Positions 22,839 to 32,169 of a DNA stretch of 64,000 nt are shown piece by piece. Each line of letters starts with the position of its first letter. The first letter of the stretch is position 1. This DNA comes from Epithemia pelagica (taxonomy: Eukaryota > Protista > Bacillariophyta), in the NCBI GenBank assembly GCA_946965045.2, contig OX337239.1, forward strand, positions 744,001 to 808,000, written 5' to 3'. The notes below the pieces were generated by a model. That model was not told the DNA's origin, ran no database searches, and worked only from the letters and a program-made list of their open reading frames with translations. The translations under genes and the position numbers were made by a program.

Positions 22839-25303
22839 GGTTCTGGTGACGGTGAAGGACTGGGTAGTATGTTTGTTTGTGTGTGTGTGTGTGTCGCGCT
22901 AATGAGAGAGCGAGCGAGAGAGAAAAAATCAATCCGCGTTTGGTTTCTGGTTCTGTTAGTCAACGATTGCTTGACAAGAACAATGGTTCACCAGCTTGAC
23001 ACCACTAAAAGTCAACTCGAAAATGAACCAAATGCACCAAAGAGAGAATGAATGAATGACTTCACTCTCTTGTTGTTGATGTTCTTCTTTGTTGCTGCAG
23101 ACCCACAAGGGTTTGACAATAAGAGTGTTGTTGTCGCACAAAGTGGTTGGAGGGAGGAGAAGCGTCAAGGCTCTTTGGTTGTCGTCCCCGAAACTGGTTT
23201 GCCAAGAAGTAAAATAAATGTGTGCACCCAGACTCGAACAATGGTTGCCACCGGAAGAGAAACGGTGGCTGCCAGAATTGTTTGCTGTTTGTTTTTTTGG
23301 AACAACGGTTGGGGAGACCCCACGCAAAATGACTGTTGACGGTTCCAAACGACAACGACAATGGCTGCAAGCTGGAACAATGGTCGTTGGTGTGGATAGA
23401 GTTCGGCCACCAACAGATAAAGTCGGTTGTTGAGAAAGTATGGAGTGTTGTTGTTGTGTGTCGAGACAGAGTCACACTCTATCTGTTGCGCAGTCGTTCA
23501 GGTTTTCTGACAGCGTCTCGTATTCGCGCAACAACAACAACAACAACAAAGAGGAGGGCAGCAAGCACACCCATAGACACTGGCTGTTGTCGCATGACAC
23601 TAGGAGTGTCTGTTCTATTTATAGAGATAGGACATGGAAGGGCTTTGCCTTCCACGCTGTGAGTTGCGTCGGTTGTGGATGGTTGCCACTTGGAGGGGAG
23701 TGGTCGGCTCTCTAAATACTCTTGTGGGTCGTGCTCTCACATTCCAGCCGGCACCGTATGTGTATGTTGTCCCACCCTCGTGACAACAACAACAAACAAC
23801 ACAACAACACTCAAGTCGTGTCTTCCTCTTCATTCCTCATGCTCCTCATCATCATTAGTATTGTTGTTAATGTTGTTATGTTCTCGGGATGATGGAAACG
23901 ACGGCAGGATGGTCATGGTCCCTGACTTGGTCGCAGGGGCGTTGGACAGAGGACCCACACTGACTGTGCCACTTGGAACCAACTCTTTGCGTATTATCAA
24001 TTATCATATGAGGCGGCTCGTTGGTCCGATTGAGCGGGAAATCGGCTGGCGCGACAACGAACACTCGAGACCGTTGCACCCGTTCGTCCATGCTAACTAT
24101 CCGTTTGTACACTGGTATACAGATGCTGGATTCCACGAATACTTAGATGCATCCCCACGGAGATCGTGATCCATTATCACAGTCCCAACCAGTATCTTGA
24201 TAAGAGAATGGGGCCTGAGGTACGTGTGTGACCTTCTAAGTAGACTTTGTTCGCGCCATGGTTCAGTTTTGCGGCTCGCGCGCACACACTGTCCTTCCAG
24301 TGGACGGCAAGAGAAGGCTTCTCACTCATCTCCGCGCCAGATGCAACACCATGACATCATGTTGGAACACACCATACCCCGTCAGTGATCATCCTCATTG
24401 GTGTATATAGTAGTGAAGTGAAGCGAGGGTGGGCTGCAGGAGGAACAAGTGTCGGTTTGGCCGTTGAACCTCGTCGTTGTTTTTTTGTTGGAACCGTTGG
24501 TGGAGAGGGTGATGACGGCTGTAGTCGTTGTGCATTGTCGTTGTTGAGTGTTGTCGTTGTGTGTTGTCGTTGGGCAGTATCATCTTCTGTTGTTCGGGTG
24601 GTGCATCGTTCCATTGTCGTCGTTGCGGTCCACATACATACAGACTCTCTCGCTGGACATGGGCTCTTCTTGTCTGTAACCCCGACACCAGAAACAACAA
24701 ACGGACAGAGTGTGGACGGACAACGAGTGAGTAGGTAGTCCTCACCGGGGATTCGAAAACCATGGTGGGGGTATCTCGTCATGGTGGTACTGCCTACATA
24801 GTAGAGCAGTAGAGTAGCTCCACCAGGAAATAGGATATCCGAATCAAGTAGAGACACTGGCCCAACGAAATCAGGTCGGTCCAAACACACACAGTGGAAT
24901 GTATATACGAGCTCCACAGCCACAAAACCGTCAACTAGGATTCTGCCACCAGCAAACTTCATCGCTCTTGGTTGTGGGCCACGTCGATCCCTCTCAAGAC
25001 CACAAAACGAAAAGAAAATGCTCGCCTCCTTCCACAACTACCGAGGAGATTGTTTGCGGTTATTATATACGGAGATGTAAGGCTAGGTAAGGTACTTTCG
25101 ACACTTGTCGACATTTGGTTCTCCCTCATTCGGCGTATGATTGATTGGGTAGAGAGCTAGACGATGCGGCCAATTTGACTACCGTAGAATATTGGTTTGT
25201 GTGTCATCTCTGTGCTTGCCAGTCTCGTGAATGAAACAACACAGGATTGCTCTGAGATCGTTTCCCAGATACTCGCAAAGCGCTTATACTTTTTACATCT
25301 TTC

Positions 25304-25621
25304 TGTTGAAAAAGGAGACAAAGAAGGACCAACAAAGGGAACGGTCTTGCCGTCAACCCTCAATGATGAACGAAATCCCAATGACAATCCCAAGCAGGAA
25401 GAAAACAGTGACGTACTGAGTGGCCCAGATAAGAAGGTGTCATGCCCAGATAAGAAGGTGTCATGGGCGAAACCGTCCTACGCGGAGATCGTCAAACGAT
25501 CTCATTCTATTAAGTTAAAACGTAACGAGAGTAATAGCAAGTGATTTCTAAAGGAAACACAGCGCACCTCCGTAGAAGAGCACCGGATCGTTGAAGACGA
25601 ACCTCAGCCCTCCTTCCAACA
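25304..25621 (+). repeat. 5' LTR (contains a 21-bp tandem duplication GCCCAGATAAGAAGGTGTCAT x2)
   Basis: Identical to 31798-32115 except T25542 vs C32036. Confidence 0.97.
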
Positions 25622-25635
25622 TTAACTTAATAGAA
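25622..25635 (+). promoter_or_regulatory. Putative self-priming primer-binding site
   Basis: TTAACTTAATAGAA directly follows the LTR's terminal CA. It is the exact reverse complement of TTCTATTAAGTTAA at 25505-25518 in the LTR. There is no TGG tRNA-type PBS. Confidence 0.7.
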
Positions 25636-25658
25636 AAGACTATCCTGAAACATCCTGC

Positions 25659-26246
25659 ATGGAACGAGACAAAGTATTCCGAGTCCTATACGCCAAGCAA
25701 GTCATCGAATCCCTACACCGCCAGCGTGCCAGGATCCACCAAGATCGGTCTCGGATTCTCACCCAATACCACAACGAATTGGAAGCGAACAGAGAAGCAC
25801 AAGTGCGAAACGAAGAACGTCTTGGCGCCGCGTATCAAACGCTTGAAAACGCCATTGACGACGAGGACGACGGATTGACTAGTGAGTCGAGTAGACGAAG
25901 CACTCCTCACCGAGCCACAAGCGCAACAGTCTCTACCGACGACTATTTCAAGGGTCCCGACGCAGGCGACAACCAAGTTGCTGGTGCTCGTGCGGAATAC
26001 CAGTACCCTTCCGCAGTAACCTCCTCCACTGCCGTGGCAGCCCCCGCGAGCACACAAGGTGAATCTGAAGCGGAGAGCGAACCAAGAGAAGGACAGGGAG
26101 ACAGCAGCGTCGAAGTCGTTGCCAGTCCCAATAAGGACAAAAGTAACCGAACCCGGAAGGCGGAACCAGACGCTAAGCCCGCAGCCAAAGTAACCACCAG
26201 ATCGGTGAGAGAGAAGCGCTCGAAGAAGAAGCGACGCACCAGGTAA
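25659..26246 (+). CDS. Extra retrotransposon ORF-A (195 aa; helical/coiled-coil N-terminus, basic NLS-like C-terminus)
   Basis: ATG-initiated ORF between the 5' LTR and gag, ending KRSKKKRRTR. No recognised domain. Confidence 0.55.
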   Translation: MERDKVFRVLYAKQVIESLHRQRARIHQDRSRILTQYHNELEANREAQVRNEERLGAAYQTLENAIDDEDDGLTSESSRRSTPHRATSATVSTDDYFKGPDAGDNQVAGARAEYQYPSAVTSSTAVAAPASTQGESEAESEPREGQGDSSVEVVASPNKDKSNRTRKAEPDAKPAAKVTTRSVREKRSKKKRRTR

Positions 26247-26306
26247 TCGATTACATAGGCACTCCCTGAACCCCCGCGCGTCATTGCATTGTTTCCCTGA
26301 CGTTTT

Positions 26307-26852
26307 ATGGCTGCACAAGACGACGACATTGAAGACATCCTTTTCCGTCTCCAAGAGCTAGCCGCTGAGCAAGTAGTGCTCCTTGATCGTCTGTCTTCCC
26401 TTCGAGAGGTGGAGAGACTCACATCACCGACCGCGCCAAACGCGACGAACCAAGAACCACAACACCAAGAAGAGACAGCAGAGGATTCTCGTGCTGACTG
26501 CACACAAGGAAGACTTAGTCCACACCACCCACGGGCAGATCAGAGTCTTTGGGGTCGGAATATCAGTGTGCGGCGTTTTAACCCAGGCGACGCTGTTGAG
26601 ATACTCAACCCGGTACCACCAGAGGTCGAAGGAGGAGTGTCCACCCGAAGGGATCACACGGGTGTGACTTACAAGACAGCGGGAAACTGGGTCTACATTT
26701 ACACCGACACCGGTAGACACATACAACGAGACAGGAAGAACGTTGCATTGTTGACGAGGGCCCGTGATGAGTACATCACCTCAATCGCAGGCGCCCCCCT
26801 CAGAAGGAGCGACCTCGAACGGTGGCAGTACCACGAGCGGACAATCGTCTAG
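26307..26852 (+). CDS. Extra retrotransposon ORF-B (181 aa; coiled coil plus KOW/SH3-like beta domain)
   Basis: RRFNPGDAVEILNP...TGVTYKTAGNWVYIYTDTGRHIQRDRKNV resembles a KOW-type beta barrel. It overlaps the gag start. Confidence 0.6.
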   Translation: MAAQDDDIEDILFRLQELAAEQVVLLDRLSSLREVERLTSPTAPNATNQEPQHQEETAEDSRADCTQGRLSPHHPRADQSLWGRNISVRRFNPGDAVEILNPVPPEVEGGVSTRRDHTGVTYKTAGNWVYIYTDTGRHIQRDRKNVALLTRARDEYITSIAGAPLRRSDLERWQYHERTIV

Positions 26853-29800
26853 TGGTGGTAACGGTAACCGGCGGGGTGGACGCAACGGCCGCGGTGGTCG
26901 AGGACGCCGCAATAACAACGGTGGAAGTGGTGGCACAAGAGGTCAGGGCAAGGCGAAGTTTAAAGGCGACACGTCTGCAATGAATGGGCACGTTTTCCAA
27001 GTATTCGCTGAATGCGACGACAAGCAACAGTTCGCGAAGACGATTGAGGCCCTCGGCGCATATATAGCGAAGGAGTTGAAGTACCCTGACGACCTGGTCA
27101 CCCTCACTCGCGATCTCGAGAACCCAACGATTGAGGAACCCACGGAACCCCCTGAAGATGAGACGAGTCGAGTCCGCATTGCCATGTTCGAGAAGGAATG
27201 CCAACTCTGTGTAACTCGTCAACACGAGCTCAATGGCAATCTACGTGCGATCTTTGCAGTAATCTGGGGCCAGTGTTCGGAAGCAATGAAGGCTAAGTTG
27301 CAGGGTCTGGACGAGTTCAAGGAGCGTGAGCGACGCAATGACTGTGCCTGGCTCCTCAAGGAGATCAAAGGCATTCGTCACCGTTTCGAAGAGAAACGCT
27401 ACTACCCTTTGTCGCTGCGTGATGCGTTGGCAAATTTCTATAGCTACCGACAGGGTCCAGGAGAGTCCCTTTCCGATTACTTACAACATTTTCGCTATAA
27501 CGTTGATGTTCTTGAGCATTACGGCGGCCAGGTTGGCGCCGATCCCGGCCTTCTTACCATGGTGGAAGAAGAGGACGATGAGTTAACCGGTGAACTCGAA
27601 TTTGCACGTGCGGCCAAGGATAGGCTCCTTGCAATCCAGTTTTTACACAATGCCGACGGAAAGCGTTTCGGTGGGCTCCTCGTTGATCTCGAGAACCAAC
27701 ATAGTCGTAACACGGATCAATATCCCAGGGATTTGGCCAGTGCATACTCCCTCCTGGTCAGTTATCGGCCACCCAAGGTACCCACTCCTTCCCAGCCTGC
27801 CTCGGAGAACGCCTCCTCCTCATCCGGAGCGTCTTCGGGAGCACCTGCCACCAGCGATGGCCTCCAGTTCGTCCAGAATGGGCTTCCTGTTCCTGGCACC
27901 GACGGTATTTTGCACGAAAACGTGAAGTGTTATCGTTGCAAGGGCTTCGGCCATTATGCCAACGGCTGTCCAGTTTCCCCCGACGAGCTCCAGTTGCTCC
28001 AGTCCACGACCTCGTCCGGTTTCAGTTTTGCACAAGCTGCCGTCTCCCTTCCGAAGTCTTGGGTGCTCTTGGATAGCCAGTCTACCGTTTCTGTTTTTTG
28101 TAATCGGTCTCTCCTCATGAACATTCGCCCCAGCGCTAACGCCATGACAGTCCACACCAACGGTGGCTCGCAAACCTCCCATCTCGTCGGCGACGTCCCC
28201 AATTTCGGCACCGTCTGGTTCAATCCGGATTCTATTGCCAACATCTTGTCGCTCGCCGCCGTTCGTCGCGTGTGTCGTGTCACCATGGACTCCGCTGGTG
28301 ACGCGTCTTTCCTCGTCCATCGTACCGACAAGCCGCCCCTGGTGTTCCACGAGGTCAAAAGTGGCCTTTACGTTCACGACACCGCCGCTCCATCGGCCGT
28401 GCCCCTCACCTTTGTGTCCACCGTCTCGGCCAACGCCGCTTTTTTCTCCCCCCGCGAGGTCGAAGGAGCGCAACAAGCCCGACGCCTATATCGTCTACTT
28501 GGTCGACCTTCGCAGCGCGATTTCGAAAGCGCCCTCAAGAACAACCTCATCCGATTTCGAAAGCGCCCTCAAGAACAACCTCATCCGATTTCGAAAGCGC
28601 CCTCAAGAACAACCTCATCCGCAACTCCCCCGTCACCTCCGACGACGCCAAGCGCCCTTATCATCTACGGGCCGGACGTTGCAGCCCTCAAAGGCAAAAC
28701 AACGAAGCGTAAATCCACTCACGTTCCCAGCATAACCCCGACTCCGGTTTCCCCCTCCATCAAAGACGCCCACGGACAACTCACTTTGTGTGCCGACGTA
28801 CTCTTCGTACAAGGCCTTCCTTTCCTTCATACCATTGCTCACCACATCAAATTTCGCACAATTACTGCCATGAACACCAGTGGGAACCCCAGCGCATCAC
28901 ACATCATGAACGACCTACAGGGAATCCTGCAGATGTACCGGACACGTGGTTTCGTCGTCAGCGACCTACACGCCGACCTACAATTTGAACCGCTCAGGAA
29001 TCGTCTCCTTCCTATCCATCTCAACGTGGCTGCGCAAGACGATCACGTGGGCGACGTAGAACGATCCGTGCGAACAATCAAGGAGCGTGTGCGCTCCACA
29101 GTTCACGGACTCCCGTATAGGTGGTACCCAGTCATTATGGTCAAGGAACTCGTGATACATGCGATCAAGTCGCTTAACCAGCTTCCCAGTGCATTCGGCG
29201 GTATCAGTCCCACGGAAAGTCCACGCAAGATTGTGACCGGTCTGCCTGACCCGGACTATTCGAAAATGAAGATCGAGTTTGGACAGTACGCCCAGGTGTT
29301 TGAAGACAACACACCGAGTAACACGAACGCCGCCCGAACGACCGGTGCCATCGCGTTGAACCCGACTGGAAACGAACAAGGAAGCTACCATTTCATGTCC
29401 CTCACCACTGGGAGAAAATTGGCACGAAACCAGTGGACACCACTGCCCATCACGTCCGACGTTATCGAGCGCGTGCACCAGATGGCCCAAGCCCAACGAC
29501 AGAAGGAAAGAACAGGTGGAAACCTACTTTTTGAATGGGGTCCAAATGACGAGGTCCCCGATGACGACGCCGACGTCGAGGATACCGACGACGGCGACAT
29601 TGGGACACAACAAGAAGACGCGCCGGCAGACGAGGCAGTGGTACATGAGCCACCAGCACCACCAAACGACGTGCAACAACAAGATGAAGACGTACATGAC
29701 GATCACCAACCACCGGAACAAAACGATCAAGACGCATTAGTGGCAGAGGTGGCGGAAGTGAGCGAGAGTGAAGAGGGAGCCAGCGACAACGCTGACGAAA

Positions 29801-31599
29801 CCATGGAGATAGTGCTCGAGGAAGAAGCCGACAATAATAGTGAACCCCTGTTCCCGCAGGAAGATGTAGACACGCAAGAAGAAGGAGCGCAAGAGCCAGG
29901 AGCGCAGGAAGACTCTGCCACACAAGAAAACAACGCGGGTGTCTACAACCTGCGTGCGGACCGCGAGAGGTCCTATGAGCACAGGTACGACCATCAATAC
30001 CTGCATTTTGCGCTAGCACAAGTTGCAGCCCGCTTCTTGCCCGAAGCAACAATGAAGGAAATCAACAAAAACAACGCGTGGGATTTGGCGACGAGCAAGT
30101 ACATTCAGCCAAACCGCCCCAGCATCGCGAATGCCACACAAAAAATACAGCGCGAGGTCATGCTGACCAAAATGAGTGCCGCTGCGGGCATCAAAAGGTA
30201 CGGACAACCAGCCATTGACGCGCTCCTCAAGGAATTTCTGCAGTTGGATGAACAAGCAGTCTTCGATCCCAAACATGCACATGAACTGACAAGAGAACAG
30301 AAACGCGAGGCGCTTCGTTCTGTAAACCTCATCAAAGAGAAAAGATGTGGAAAGATCAAGGGGCGCAGCTGTGCCGACGGACGCCCACAACGCGACAAAT
30401 ATGACAAAGGCTCAATCGCGTCTCCGGCATTGTCTAGCGACGGACTAATGTTCACACTCATGATAGACGCCATCGAGCGTCGGGACGTCGCAACAGCCGA
30501 CATCGCGGGAGCCTATCTGAAGGCACTCATGCCTGACTTTGTTCTGATGAAGCTAGAGGGACCCGTGGTCGACGTTTTTTGCAAGATGAACGAGGAGTAT
30601 AAGCAATACGTTACTTTTGAGAACGGAAAGAAGGTGATCTACGTGAGACTAAACAAAGCGTTATACGGCTGTGTTCGGTCAGCACTGCTGTGGTATGAGA
30701 TGCTCCTCGGTGCACTGAAAGAAATGGGTTTTGAAGTTAACCCCTACGAACAGTGCGTAGCCAACGCCATGATCAACGGAACACAAGCAACCATTGCGTG
30801 GTACGTGGATGATTTGAAGATATCACACGTACAAAGCGAGGTCGTGACGGACATCATCAAGGAATTGGAACGTCGGTTTGAAAAAATGACGGTAACACGT
30901 GGAAACGAACACACGTACCTAGGCATGAACATCGCATTCAAGGGTGACGGAACAGTCGAATTAAAAATGGAACAGTACATCGATGAGGCAATCGCGGCTT
31001 TCGACGAACCAATCACCAACACGGCACCGACTCCAGCCAAGAAGGATCTTTTTGAGGTCAATCATACAGCTATGAAACTGCCAAAAGAGAAGGCCGATAT
31101 GTTTCATAGCATCACGGCGAAACTCCTGTATATGTCAACACGCGCACGATCAGATATCCAGACAGCCATTGCTTTCCTCACCACACGTGTGAGCACATGC
31201 ACCGAACAGGACCGCATGAAGCTCAAGCGCGTCCTTGAATACTTACATGGAACAAGAGACCTCACCTACATCCTCGCCGCCGACGACGTCCGGAACTTAG
31301 TGACCTGGGTCGACGCATCGTACGCGATCCACTCCGATATGAAAAGCCACACGGGTGGTGTCATGTCACTCGGACGAGGAGCACTGGTGACGAAGTCCCG
31401 AAAACAAAAGCTTAATACCAAAAGCTCCACCGAGGCAGAAGTTGTTGGTGCGAGTGACTACCTACCCAACACCATATGGGCTAAACGCTTCTTAGCCGAA
31501 CAAGGTTATGACGTCAAAAGCATTTTCGCGCAAGATAATCAGAGCGCAATCCGACTTGAGAAAACTGCGGTCCGCCGGGAAGCAATCCCGGCACATTGA
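26767..31599 (+). CDS. Copia gag-pol polyprotein; the RNase H C-terminus is frameshifted and continues in the 31508-32266 frame
   Basis: CYRCKGFGHYANGC (CCHC knuckle), LLDSQST (PR), LCADVL / ADLQF / DVERSVRTIKE (IN DDE), DIAGAYL, KALYG, WYVDDL (RT), WVDASYA, SSTEAE, QDNQSA (RH). HIDIRF and ADFYTKPLQG lie in another frame. Confidence 0.95.
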   Translation: MSTSPQSQAPPSEGATSNGGSTTSGQSSSGGNGNRRGGRNGRGGRGRRNNNGGSGGTRGQGKAKFKGDTSAMNGHVFQVFAECDDKQQFAKTIEALGAYIAKELKYPDDLVTLTRDLENPTIEEPTEPPEDETSRVRIAMFEKECQLCVTRQHELNGNLRAIFAVIWGQCSEAMKAKLQGLDEFKERERRNDCAWLLKEIKGIRHRFEEKRYYPLSLRDALANFYSYRQGPGESLSDYLQHFRYNVDVLEHYGGQVGADPGLLTMVEEEDDELTGELEFARAAKDRLLAIQFLHNADGKRFGGLLVDLENQHSRNTDQYPRDLASAYSLLVSYRPPKVPTPSQPASENASSSSGASSGAPATSDGLQFVQNGLPVPGTDGILHENVKCYRCKGFGHYANGCPVSPDELQLLQSTTSSGFSFAQAAVSLPKSWVLLDSQSTVSVFCNRSLLMNIRPSANAMTVHTNGGSQTSHLVGDVPNFGTVWFNPDSIANILSLAAVRRVCRVTMDSAGDASFLVHRTDKPPLVFHEVKSGLYVHDTAAPSAVPLTFVSTVSANAAFFSPREVEGAQQARRLYRLLGRPSQRDFESALKNNLIRFRKRPQEQPHPISKAPSRTTSSATPPSPPTTPSALIIYGPDVAALKGKTTKRKSTHVPSITPTPVSPSIKDAHGQLTLCADVLFVQGLPFLHTIAHHIKFRTITAMNTSGNPSASHIMNDLQGILQMYRTRGFVVSDLHADLQFEPLRNRLLPIHLNVAAQDDHVGDVERSVRTIKERVRSTVHGLPYRWYPVIMVKELVIHAIKSLNQLPSAFGGISPTESPRKIVTGLPDPDYSKMKIEFGQYAQVFEDNTPSNTNAARTTGAIALNPTGNEQGSYHFMSLTTGRKLARNQWTPLPITSDVIERVHQMAQAQRQKERTGGNLLFEWGPNDEVPDDDADVEDTDDGDIGTQQEDAPADEAVVHEPPAPPNDVQQQDEDVHDDHQPPEQNDQDALVAEVAEVSESEEGASDNADETMEIVLEEEADNNSEPLFPQEDVDTQEEGAQEPGAQEDSATQENNAGVYNLRADRERSYEHRYDHQYLHFALAQVAARFLPEATMKEINKNNAWDLATSKYIQPNRPSIANATQKIQREVMLTKMSAAAGIKRYGQPAIDALLKEFLQLDEQAVFDPKHAHELTREQKREALRSVNLIKEKRCGKIKGRSCADGRPQRDKYDKGSIASPALSSDGLMFTLMIDAIERRDVATADIAGAYLKALMPDFVLMKLEGPVVDVFCKMNEEYKQYVTFENGKKVIYVRLNKALYGCVRSALLWYEMLLGALKEMGFEVNPYEQCVANAMINGTQATIAWYVDDLKISHVQSEVVTDIIKELERRFEKMTVTRGNEHTYLGMNIAFKGDGTVELKMEQYIDEAIAAFDEPITNTAPTPAKKDLFEVNHTAMKLPKEKADMFHSITAKLLYMSTRARSDIQTAIAFLTTRVSTCTEQDRMKLKRVLEYLHGTRDLTYILAADDVRNLVTWVDASYAIHSDMKSHTGGVMSLGRGALVTKSRKQKLNTKSSTEAEVVGASDYLPNTIWAKRFLAEQGYDVKSIFAQDNQSAIRLEKTAVRREAIPAH

Positions 31600-31797
31600 C
31601 ATACGCTTCTTCTTCATCAAGGATCGTGTCAAACAAGAGAATATTGAAATCTTTTACTGTCCAACGGAACAAATGTTGGCCGACTTTTATACCAAACCAT
31701 TACAAGGAGCCCTGTTTCGAAAATTTCGTGACGTACTTCTGGGCCATAAGCACATCAACACACTAAAGGACAAGACCGCTCCTATGTTGGAGGAGCG

Positions 31798-32115
31798 TGT
31801 TGAAAAAGGAGACAAAGAAGGACCAACAAAGGGAACGGTCTTGCCGTCAACCCTCAATGATGAACGAAATCCCAATGACAATCCCAAGCAGGAAGAAAAC
31901 AGTGACGTACTGAGTGGCCCAGATAAGAAGGTGTCATGCCCAGATAAGAAGGTGTCATGGGCGAAACCGTCCTACGCGGAGATCGTCAAACGATCTCATT
32001 CTATTAAGTTAAAACGTAACGAGAGTAATAGCAAGCGATTTCTAAAGGAAACACAGCGCACCTCCGTAGAAGAGCACCGGATCGTTGAAGACGAACCTCA
32101 GCCCTCCTTCCAACA
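31798..32115 (+). repeat. 3' LTR
   Basis: Direct repeat of 25304-25621, followed by the TSD CTTTC. Confidence 0.97.
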
Positions 32116-32169
32116 CTTTCTGGTCTCTTTAGCTCCCAGCACTATCGGGAGTGTCCAGTTAATCACCAT

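Follow-up and report, generated by a model that had tools for sequence, protein, structure and literature searches.

The window analysed in this work is a stretch of 64,000 nucleotides from the diatom Epithemia pelagica (contig OX337239.1, positions 744,001 to 808,000), and it contains a Ty1/copia LTR retrotransposon whose 5' LTR is followed by a sequence that lacks the TGG of a tRNA-type primer binding site (PBS). The question raised by this locus is how the minus-strand DNA of such an element is primed. The initial annotation of the window suggested that the element primes itself with the 5' end of its own RNA, as Tf1 of Schizosaccharomyces pombe does, instead of using a host tRNA. The findings in this work make it highly probable that this diatom copia clade uses Tf1-like self-priming with a 14-nt RNA, where the RNA start and the RNase H cut are predicted from the DNA sequence.

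The element occupies positions 25304-32115 of the window (6,812 bp) and is bounded by LTRs of 318 bp with TG..CA ends. All features described here are on the forward (+) strand. The 5' LTR (25304..25621, TGTTG...CAACA) is directly repeated as the 3' LTR (31798..32115), and the two LTRs differ at 1 of 318 positions (25544 T vs 32038 C). The element is flanked by the target-site duplication CTTTC, with the left copy at 25299..25303 and the right copy at 32116..32120. The LTR borders are confirmed independently by three public runs in which the element was found, all of them DNA: their contigs end precisely at 25304 and 25621, and the LTR unitigs that span 25304-25621 are at about 2x the depth of the element interior. 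An empty-site contig of DNA run X3, which also supports the target-site duplication, joins 25206-25305 straight to 32116 onward and carries a single SNP in the flanking sequence. Because that run contains an element-free allele, the insertion is recent and either hemizygous or polymorphic. The host genome was searched in full (60.5 Mb, 23 contigs) and was found to contain five copies of the family that are 97-100% identical. The single difference between the two LTRs, the five near-identical copies, and the empty-site allele indicate that the family has been mobile recently.

A polypurine-like tract, GGAGGAGCG, is located directly 5' of the 3' LTR (31789..31797), and tracts resembling ..GGAG(C/T)G sit before the 3' LTRs of relatives. 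A sequence scan also identified an exact 21-nt tandem duplication (CCCAGATAAGAAGGTGTCATG twice) in the putative U3 (25424..25465).

The gag-pol polyprotein is encoded by an ORF of 1611 aa (26764..31599) that consists of a CCHC knuckle, a protease region, an integrase, an RT with YVDD, and an RNase H. The RT (residues 1192-1425) was assigned to the Pfam family RVT_2 (PF07727) with an E-value of 5.5e-18 and a score of 65.9 bits vs a cut-off of 31.6. The exact CCHC motif is at residue 389, YVDD is at residue 1347, and an RNase H-like DAS..TEAE stretch is located after the RT. The integrase was called neither by Pfam, which was given pieces of the polyprotein, nor by the PDB sequence search. Residues 640-900 are nearest to diatom protein clusters with rve, gag_pre-integrs, and SH3_retrovirus in the protein atlas, and they are readable as the D..D..E core of an integrase, an indirect but consistent assignment. 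The gene order read from these regions, gag-PR-IN-RT-RH with the integrase upstream of the RT, is that of Ty1/copia. The closest proteins in a large database are from Fragilaria crotonensis, Nitzschia inconspicua, and Fistulifera solaris, and the nearest relatives are all from diatoms.

The copy in the window lacks 5 nt near 31565 when compared with its four sister copies (L012-L015), and this frameshift shortens its pol frame, which ends at 31599. In the sister copies, the pol frame continues beyond the border of the 3' LTR for 241 nt, crosses all of the putative U3 and the primer arm described below, and stops at the TGA equivalent to 25542-25544, where the 3' LTR of the present copy has C for T. 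The C-terminus of the RNase H encoded by the present copy is frameshifted, and this copy would depend on proteins from the sister copies. The 21-nt duplication at 25424-25465 falls where the sister copies encode the C-terminal end of pol, and it doubles the peptide PDKKVS there. The 5' leader of the element is about 1.1 kb long and contains an upstream ORF of 195 aa (25659..26246) that starts 24 nt after the PBS. No Pfam family was identified for this upstream ORF, and no similarity was found between it and the upstream ORFs of 96-138 aa of metagenome relatives. Two of the metagenome upstream ORFs are weakly alike (E = 0.002). After the 195-aa ORF and one stop, an in-frame ORF of 181 aa overlaps the start of gag-pol, and the stretch with both upstream ORFs covers 25659-26852.

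The sequence that abuts the 5' LTR directly, TTAACTTAATAGAA (25622..25635, the PBS arm), has no TGG and is the perfect 14-nt reverse complement of TTCTATTAAGTTAA (25505..25518, the LTR arm), just as the initial annotation had reported. The LTR arm is preceded by CTCA, and its second copy is in the 3' LTR at 31999-32012. The pairing stops at both flanks, with A/A on each side. The initial annotation estimated a chance of roughly 1e-6 for such a match at uniform composition. With the base composition of the LTR itself, the expected number of exact 14-mers is 4.6e-7, and shuffling the LTR 200,000 times never produced a match longer than 12 nt. The arm-pair pattern was also searched for on each strand throughout the 64-kb window, and this site was the sole match. 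In the RNA fold of 25504-25645, the arm helix closes an R-U5 loop of 103 nt (25519..25621) with a z-score of -3.3.

A pair of this kind has to be weighed against conventional priming, where the PBS would be matched by a host tRNA or by a half or fragment of one. Copia elements are often primed by tRNA-Met, through its 3' end or an internal half (PMC6317226), so the lack of TGG is insufficient to exclude a tRNA. However, the 14-mer occurs in the 60.5-Mb genome only in the two LTRs of this element and, reversed, in its PBS. With no other exact copy of the 14-mer in the genome, the host tRNA or tRNA-half match that the initial annotation had named as an alternative was not found there. The matches with one mismatch are in the sister copies, at a few other sites, and at chance-level sites that are comparable to those of a reversed-pattern control. 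The sequence TACTATTAAGTTAA, which is one mismatch from the primer arm, is present at five sites of the genome G000 (C7:1526451, C8:309515, C11:2569546, C16:1909711, and C17:2900180). These sites possibly belong to the LTRs of a sister family in which the arm begins with TAC, as in contig L071.

The two arms were also compared among copies of the family and among more distant elements of the host genome. Within the family, arm position 8 of the present copy is A in both LTRs and faces T in the PBS, and the four sister copies have G in each of their LTRs, with C opposite it in the PBS. Both variants of position 8 are also present in independent DNA runs, where 25512 A>G is found with 25628 T>C. 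The RT search of the genome gave at least 104 scored relatives among 725 candidates, and 26 copia 5' regions were sampled. A 14-nt pair with other sequences is carried by 23 of the 26 regions, from elements whose RT is 39-64% identical to that of the present element. In those 23 regions, the LTR arm always comes after (G)CTCA and the PBS arm always abuts ..CAACA. The three sampled loci that have no pair (L042, L052, and L065) are uninformative and are not counter-examples, since their 5' LTR is absent from the fetched range. When 18 distinct sequences were aligned, Watson-Crick pairs filled all 252 of 252 cells. Both sides vary in 12 of the 14 pairs, none of the pairs varies on one side only, and no G·U is present. 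Sliding the register of this alignment by 1-3 columns lowers the pairing to 38-54%, and the arm helix is the sole prediction of RNAalifold when it is run unguided on the alignment.

The same arm-pair architecture is exhibited by elements of Fragilaria crotonensis (L067) and Nitzschia inconspicua (L068) and by further public contigs. The Fistulifera locus (L069) was left out owing to an N gap. A scan of JGI metagenomes with an RT alignment gave 80 loci, many of them incomplete, where the exact pair is present in 48 of 80 on the coding strand vs 0 of 80 on the opposite strand. A few metagenome loci have LTRs and no exact pair, such as L154, whose LTRs are old (94% alike), and L146, which has an 11-nt match. 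When the elements of this genome, Fragilaria crotonensis, Nitzschia inconspicua, and marine metagenomes are pooled, 80 elements carry 50 different 14-mers. All of these are exact complements, the length is always 14 nt, the loops are 57-164 nt, and the PBS arm begins at the first base after the LTR in every one of the 80 elements. The LTR arm ends in A (base 14) in all 50 distinct elements, and T follows it in 32 of 47. The two 14-mers thus covary strongly, both within the family and in the 50 distinct arm pairs from several diatom genera.

Two kinds of contigs were considered as possible transcripts and were rejected. The metagenome contigs L070-L074 (JGI and NCBI) are circularly collapsed assemblies with terminal overlaps of 126-127 nt. 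They are circular permutations because assemblers collapse the two LTRs, and they could be misread as transcripts or as circular genomes. The Logan contigs are interrupted at repeats or contain adapters, and they offer no usable transcript end. As a separate observation, families with short loops (such as L045, L046, L047, L049, L051, and L053) share the motif GTTGCyTTTACrGCACGG in the R-U5 loop, at alignment columns ~109-126. This motif can form a hairpin of 3 bp, with one apparent compensating change in L046, and it could be a poly(A) or packaging signal.

The comparison among families bears directly on tRNA priming. The 50 PBS sequences of the relatives each match their own LTR, a variety that host tRNAs could not serve in full, and within the family the PBS has changed together with the LTR. 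Because no other 14-mer of this sequence exists in the genome and the PBS differs from family to family, the probability that a host tRNA, whole or as a half or fragment, primes the element is negligible. The exact 14-nt pair, the covariation in 50 arm pairs, and the absence of any other genomic 14-mer support the proposal of the initial annotation that this copia lineage primes itself.

The same data were used to weigh a second explanation, in which the helix acts as a structural element in the 5' leader, with a role in packaging, dimerisation, translation control, or cyclisation, and the true primer is another RNA. Covarying and conserved helices are known in the 5' leaders of many retroelements, and the CYC5:CYC3 cyclisation pairing of Ty1 is 14 nt long; priming is what we infer at the present locus. 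This explanation is nevertheless very unlikely in view of where the helix lies and how it varies. The 3' arm is at the first base after the LTR in 80 of 80 elements, a position that is set by the start of the minus strand, and no space or conserved sequence remains for another PBS. The sequence after the LTR has 50 variants between families, so no common host primer fits. The occurrence of 0 G·U in 252 cells is unusual for a purely structural helix and fits an arm that is copied from the other arm, whereas some G·U would be expected if the helix were kept by selection on RNA pairing alone.

Self-priming, which is the reading preferred here, places the LTR arm at the 5' end of the RNA. An initiator-like core promoter, TCATTCT, is located at 25502..25508 and was recognised by a motif match that is supported by the 50 distinct elements. 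Upstream of the arm, A is present at -1 in 50 of 50 elements, C at -2 in 49 of 50, and T at -3 in 46 of 50. The arm itself starts with a pyrimidine at +1 in 50 of 50 and has T at +2 in 46 of 50. Most eukaryotic initiators start at the A, which is A25504 at this locus and is the start that had been proposed in the initial annotation. The initiator-like consensus of diatoms is TCAH+1W, obtained from mapped FCP starts of the form CAY+1A (PMC4686930). The oomycete INR is YCAYTYY, and its commonest form, TCATTCT (PMC3599244), is identical to 25502-25508. By the diatom consensus, the RNA is predicted to start at 25505, which is the first paired base, and not at A25504. The base equivalent to A25504 is unpaired in 49 of 50 families. 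Either +1 is therefore the pyrimidine at 25505, or the RNA starts at 25504 with a first base that is unpaired and uncopied, and the predicted start has a margin of +/- 1 nt around 25505. Of the 14 arm positions, the first four hardly vary and the other ten do, presumably because the initiator overlaps those four. With +1 at 25505, the primer would be nt 1-14 of the RNA, comparable to the first 11 nt of Tf1.

The proposed mechanism applies to this element as a member of a diatom-specific clade of Ty1/copia whose minus-strand DNA would be primed by its own RNA and not by a host tRNA. Transcription would start from the initiator TCA|TTCT in the 5' LTR, such that nt 1-14 of the RNA correspond to 25505-25518. 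The 5' end of the RNA would fold back over the 103-nt R-U5 loop onto 25622-25635, and the RNase H of the element would cut after nt 14, where the last base is always A. The RT would then extend the freed 3'-OH through the 103 nt of U5 and R. In the established scheme of reverse transcription, the plus-strand strong-stop DNA copies the attached primer, and the base after U5 marks the position of the primer 3' end. If the plus-strand strong-stop DNA of this element likewise copies its attached primer, the PBS of the progeny would be rewritten from the primer, and both new LTRs would receive their arm from the 3' copy of R. An altered arm base could then be passed to the PBS in no more than two cycles, with no need for another independent mutation. 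Rewriting of the PBS would keep the arms perfectly Watson-Crick paired while their sequence drifts between families. The absence of mismatches and G·U and the triple change within the family, which involves two LTRs and the PBS, fit such rewriting.

The covariation fits equally well a variant of self-priming that acts in trans, where the primer, an RNA of 14 nt or longer that ends at the same base, comes either from a second RNA copy that shares the particle or from a short LTR transcript made separately. The sequence data do not separate cis from trans, and the loop has a wide range of lengths, from 57 to 164 nt, which indicates that it is not tightly constrained. Against this, the intramolecular helix is the predicted minimum-energy fold, and in Tf1, the only proven case, the structure is described as lying within the 5' UTR of one mRNA (PMC10085805). 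Priming in trans is considered improbable, and folding of the RNA 5' end onto the PBS of the same molecule remains the preferred form of self-priming.

A broader proposal extends self-priming with a fixed 14-nt ruler to the whole diatom-specific copia radiation, as a general and possibly ancestral property, with the PBS rewritten from the primer in every cycle. Such rewriting would explain the 50 different and always perfect Watson-Crick arm pairs, and we regard this broader proposal as evenly balanced between true and false. If it is true, a second superfamily that is abundant in the ocean would be independent of host tRNAs, transformable algae would allow the first test of copia self-priming, and the result would bear on hairpin priming as the primitive state of LTR elements.

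What is new in this work is a large and recently active diatom copia clade with unusually clean comparative evidence for self-priming. Self-priming is a known but uncommon strategy, which for copia elements had previously been only a prediction in one plant lineage, and diatoms are major primary producers of the sea. Annotation pipelines that require a tRNA-type PBS would drop such elements, and the transposon content of diatoms may be undercounted. An LTRdigest filter of this PBS-requiring kind was used in the annotation of Cyclotella cryptica (PMC7466962). Both the predicted transcription start and the end of U5 can be located from the arm pair, which offers a sequence rule for the 5' ends and promoters of hundreds of families. 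The strict length of 14 nt, the lack of G·U, and an A that never varies at the cut lead to testable predictions on how RNase H measures the primer and how the PBS is copied.

Among known systems, the CoDi elements of diatoms, such as Blackbeard and Surcouf of Phaeodactylum tricornutum, are similar to the present element in having a copia polyprotein, a single long gag-pol ORF, and short LTRs. The paper that defined the CoDi elements has nothing on the PBS or on priming (PMC2806351). No report of self-priming in diatoms or in CoDi elements was found in the literature searched, which leaves out most subscription journals.

The fungal GalEa elements are also copia elements without a tRNA PBS and with conserved inverted complementarity at the PBS position. 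They have a 'Conserved Hairpin Site' in place of the PBS, for which the authors found no complementary LTR sequence (PMC5445492). The complementarity of GalEa is a short, local palindrome and hairpin close downstream of the LTR, whereas the partner of the diatom PBS arm is in the LTR at the predicted RNA start.

The initial annotation regarded copia elements as normally primed by tRNA. This is commonly so, but self-priming had already been predicted for the TAR lineage of plant copia elements (Houba and Osr-1), in the same source that infers it for the Tf1/sushi group and Tcn1 (PMC6317226). Neumann et al. (2019) based the TAR prediction on a complementarity of at least 10 bp that starts 0-5 bp after the LTR (PMC6317226). 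The TAR elements are similar to the diatom element as Ty1/copia elements without a tRNA PBS, in which a stretch of the 5' LTR is complementary to the sequence that comes after the LTR. They differ in host kingdom, and the diatom pair has a fixed length of 14 nt, an offset of 0, an initiator before the arm, and extensive compensation, details for which no counterpart was found in the published TAR description.

To our knowledge, Tf1-type gypsy elements are the only self-primers that have been proven experimentally, and no copia element has been shown by experiment to self-prime. The published accounts of Tf1 describe a PBS by the 5' LTR that is complementary to the first 11 nt of the element's own RNA, and a primer that is freed by RNase H with no tRNA involved (PMC7175516, PMC10085805). 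Besides the helix between primer and PBS, Tf1 needs two duplexes adjacent to the PBS, and the three duplexes together are called the 'pretzel' (PMC10085805). In constrained minimum-energy folds of 18 leaders, a non-exhaustive search, such flanking duplexes are absent; these folds contain local loop hairpins only, and the sequence after the PBS is unpaired with the LTR. The Tf1-like architecture named in the initial annotation is therefore upheld for the central duplex of primer and PBS and not for the two flanking duplexes. The diatom element resembles Tf1 and Tf2 in a PBS that abuts the LTR and a complementary arm at the predicted RNA start; it differs in a primer of 14 nt vs 11 nt for Tf1, and the diatom case is predicted from sequence. 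The Tf1/sushi clade belongs to the Ty3/gypsy chromoviruses, which have a gypsy RT, an integrase located after the RT, and a chromodomain, whereas the diatom element has an RVT_2 domain and an integrase before the RT, with no chromodomain noted. The diatom element would work like Tf1, on the reading preferred here, but it is not a member of the Tf1/sushi clade.
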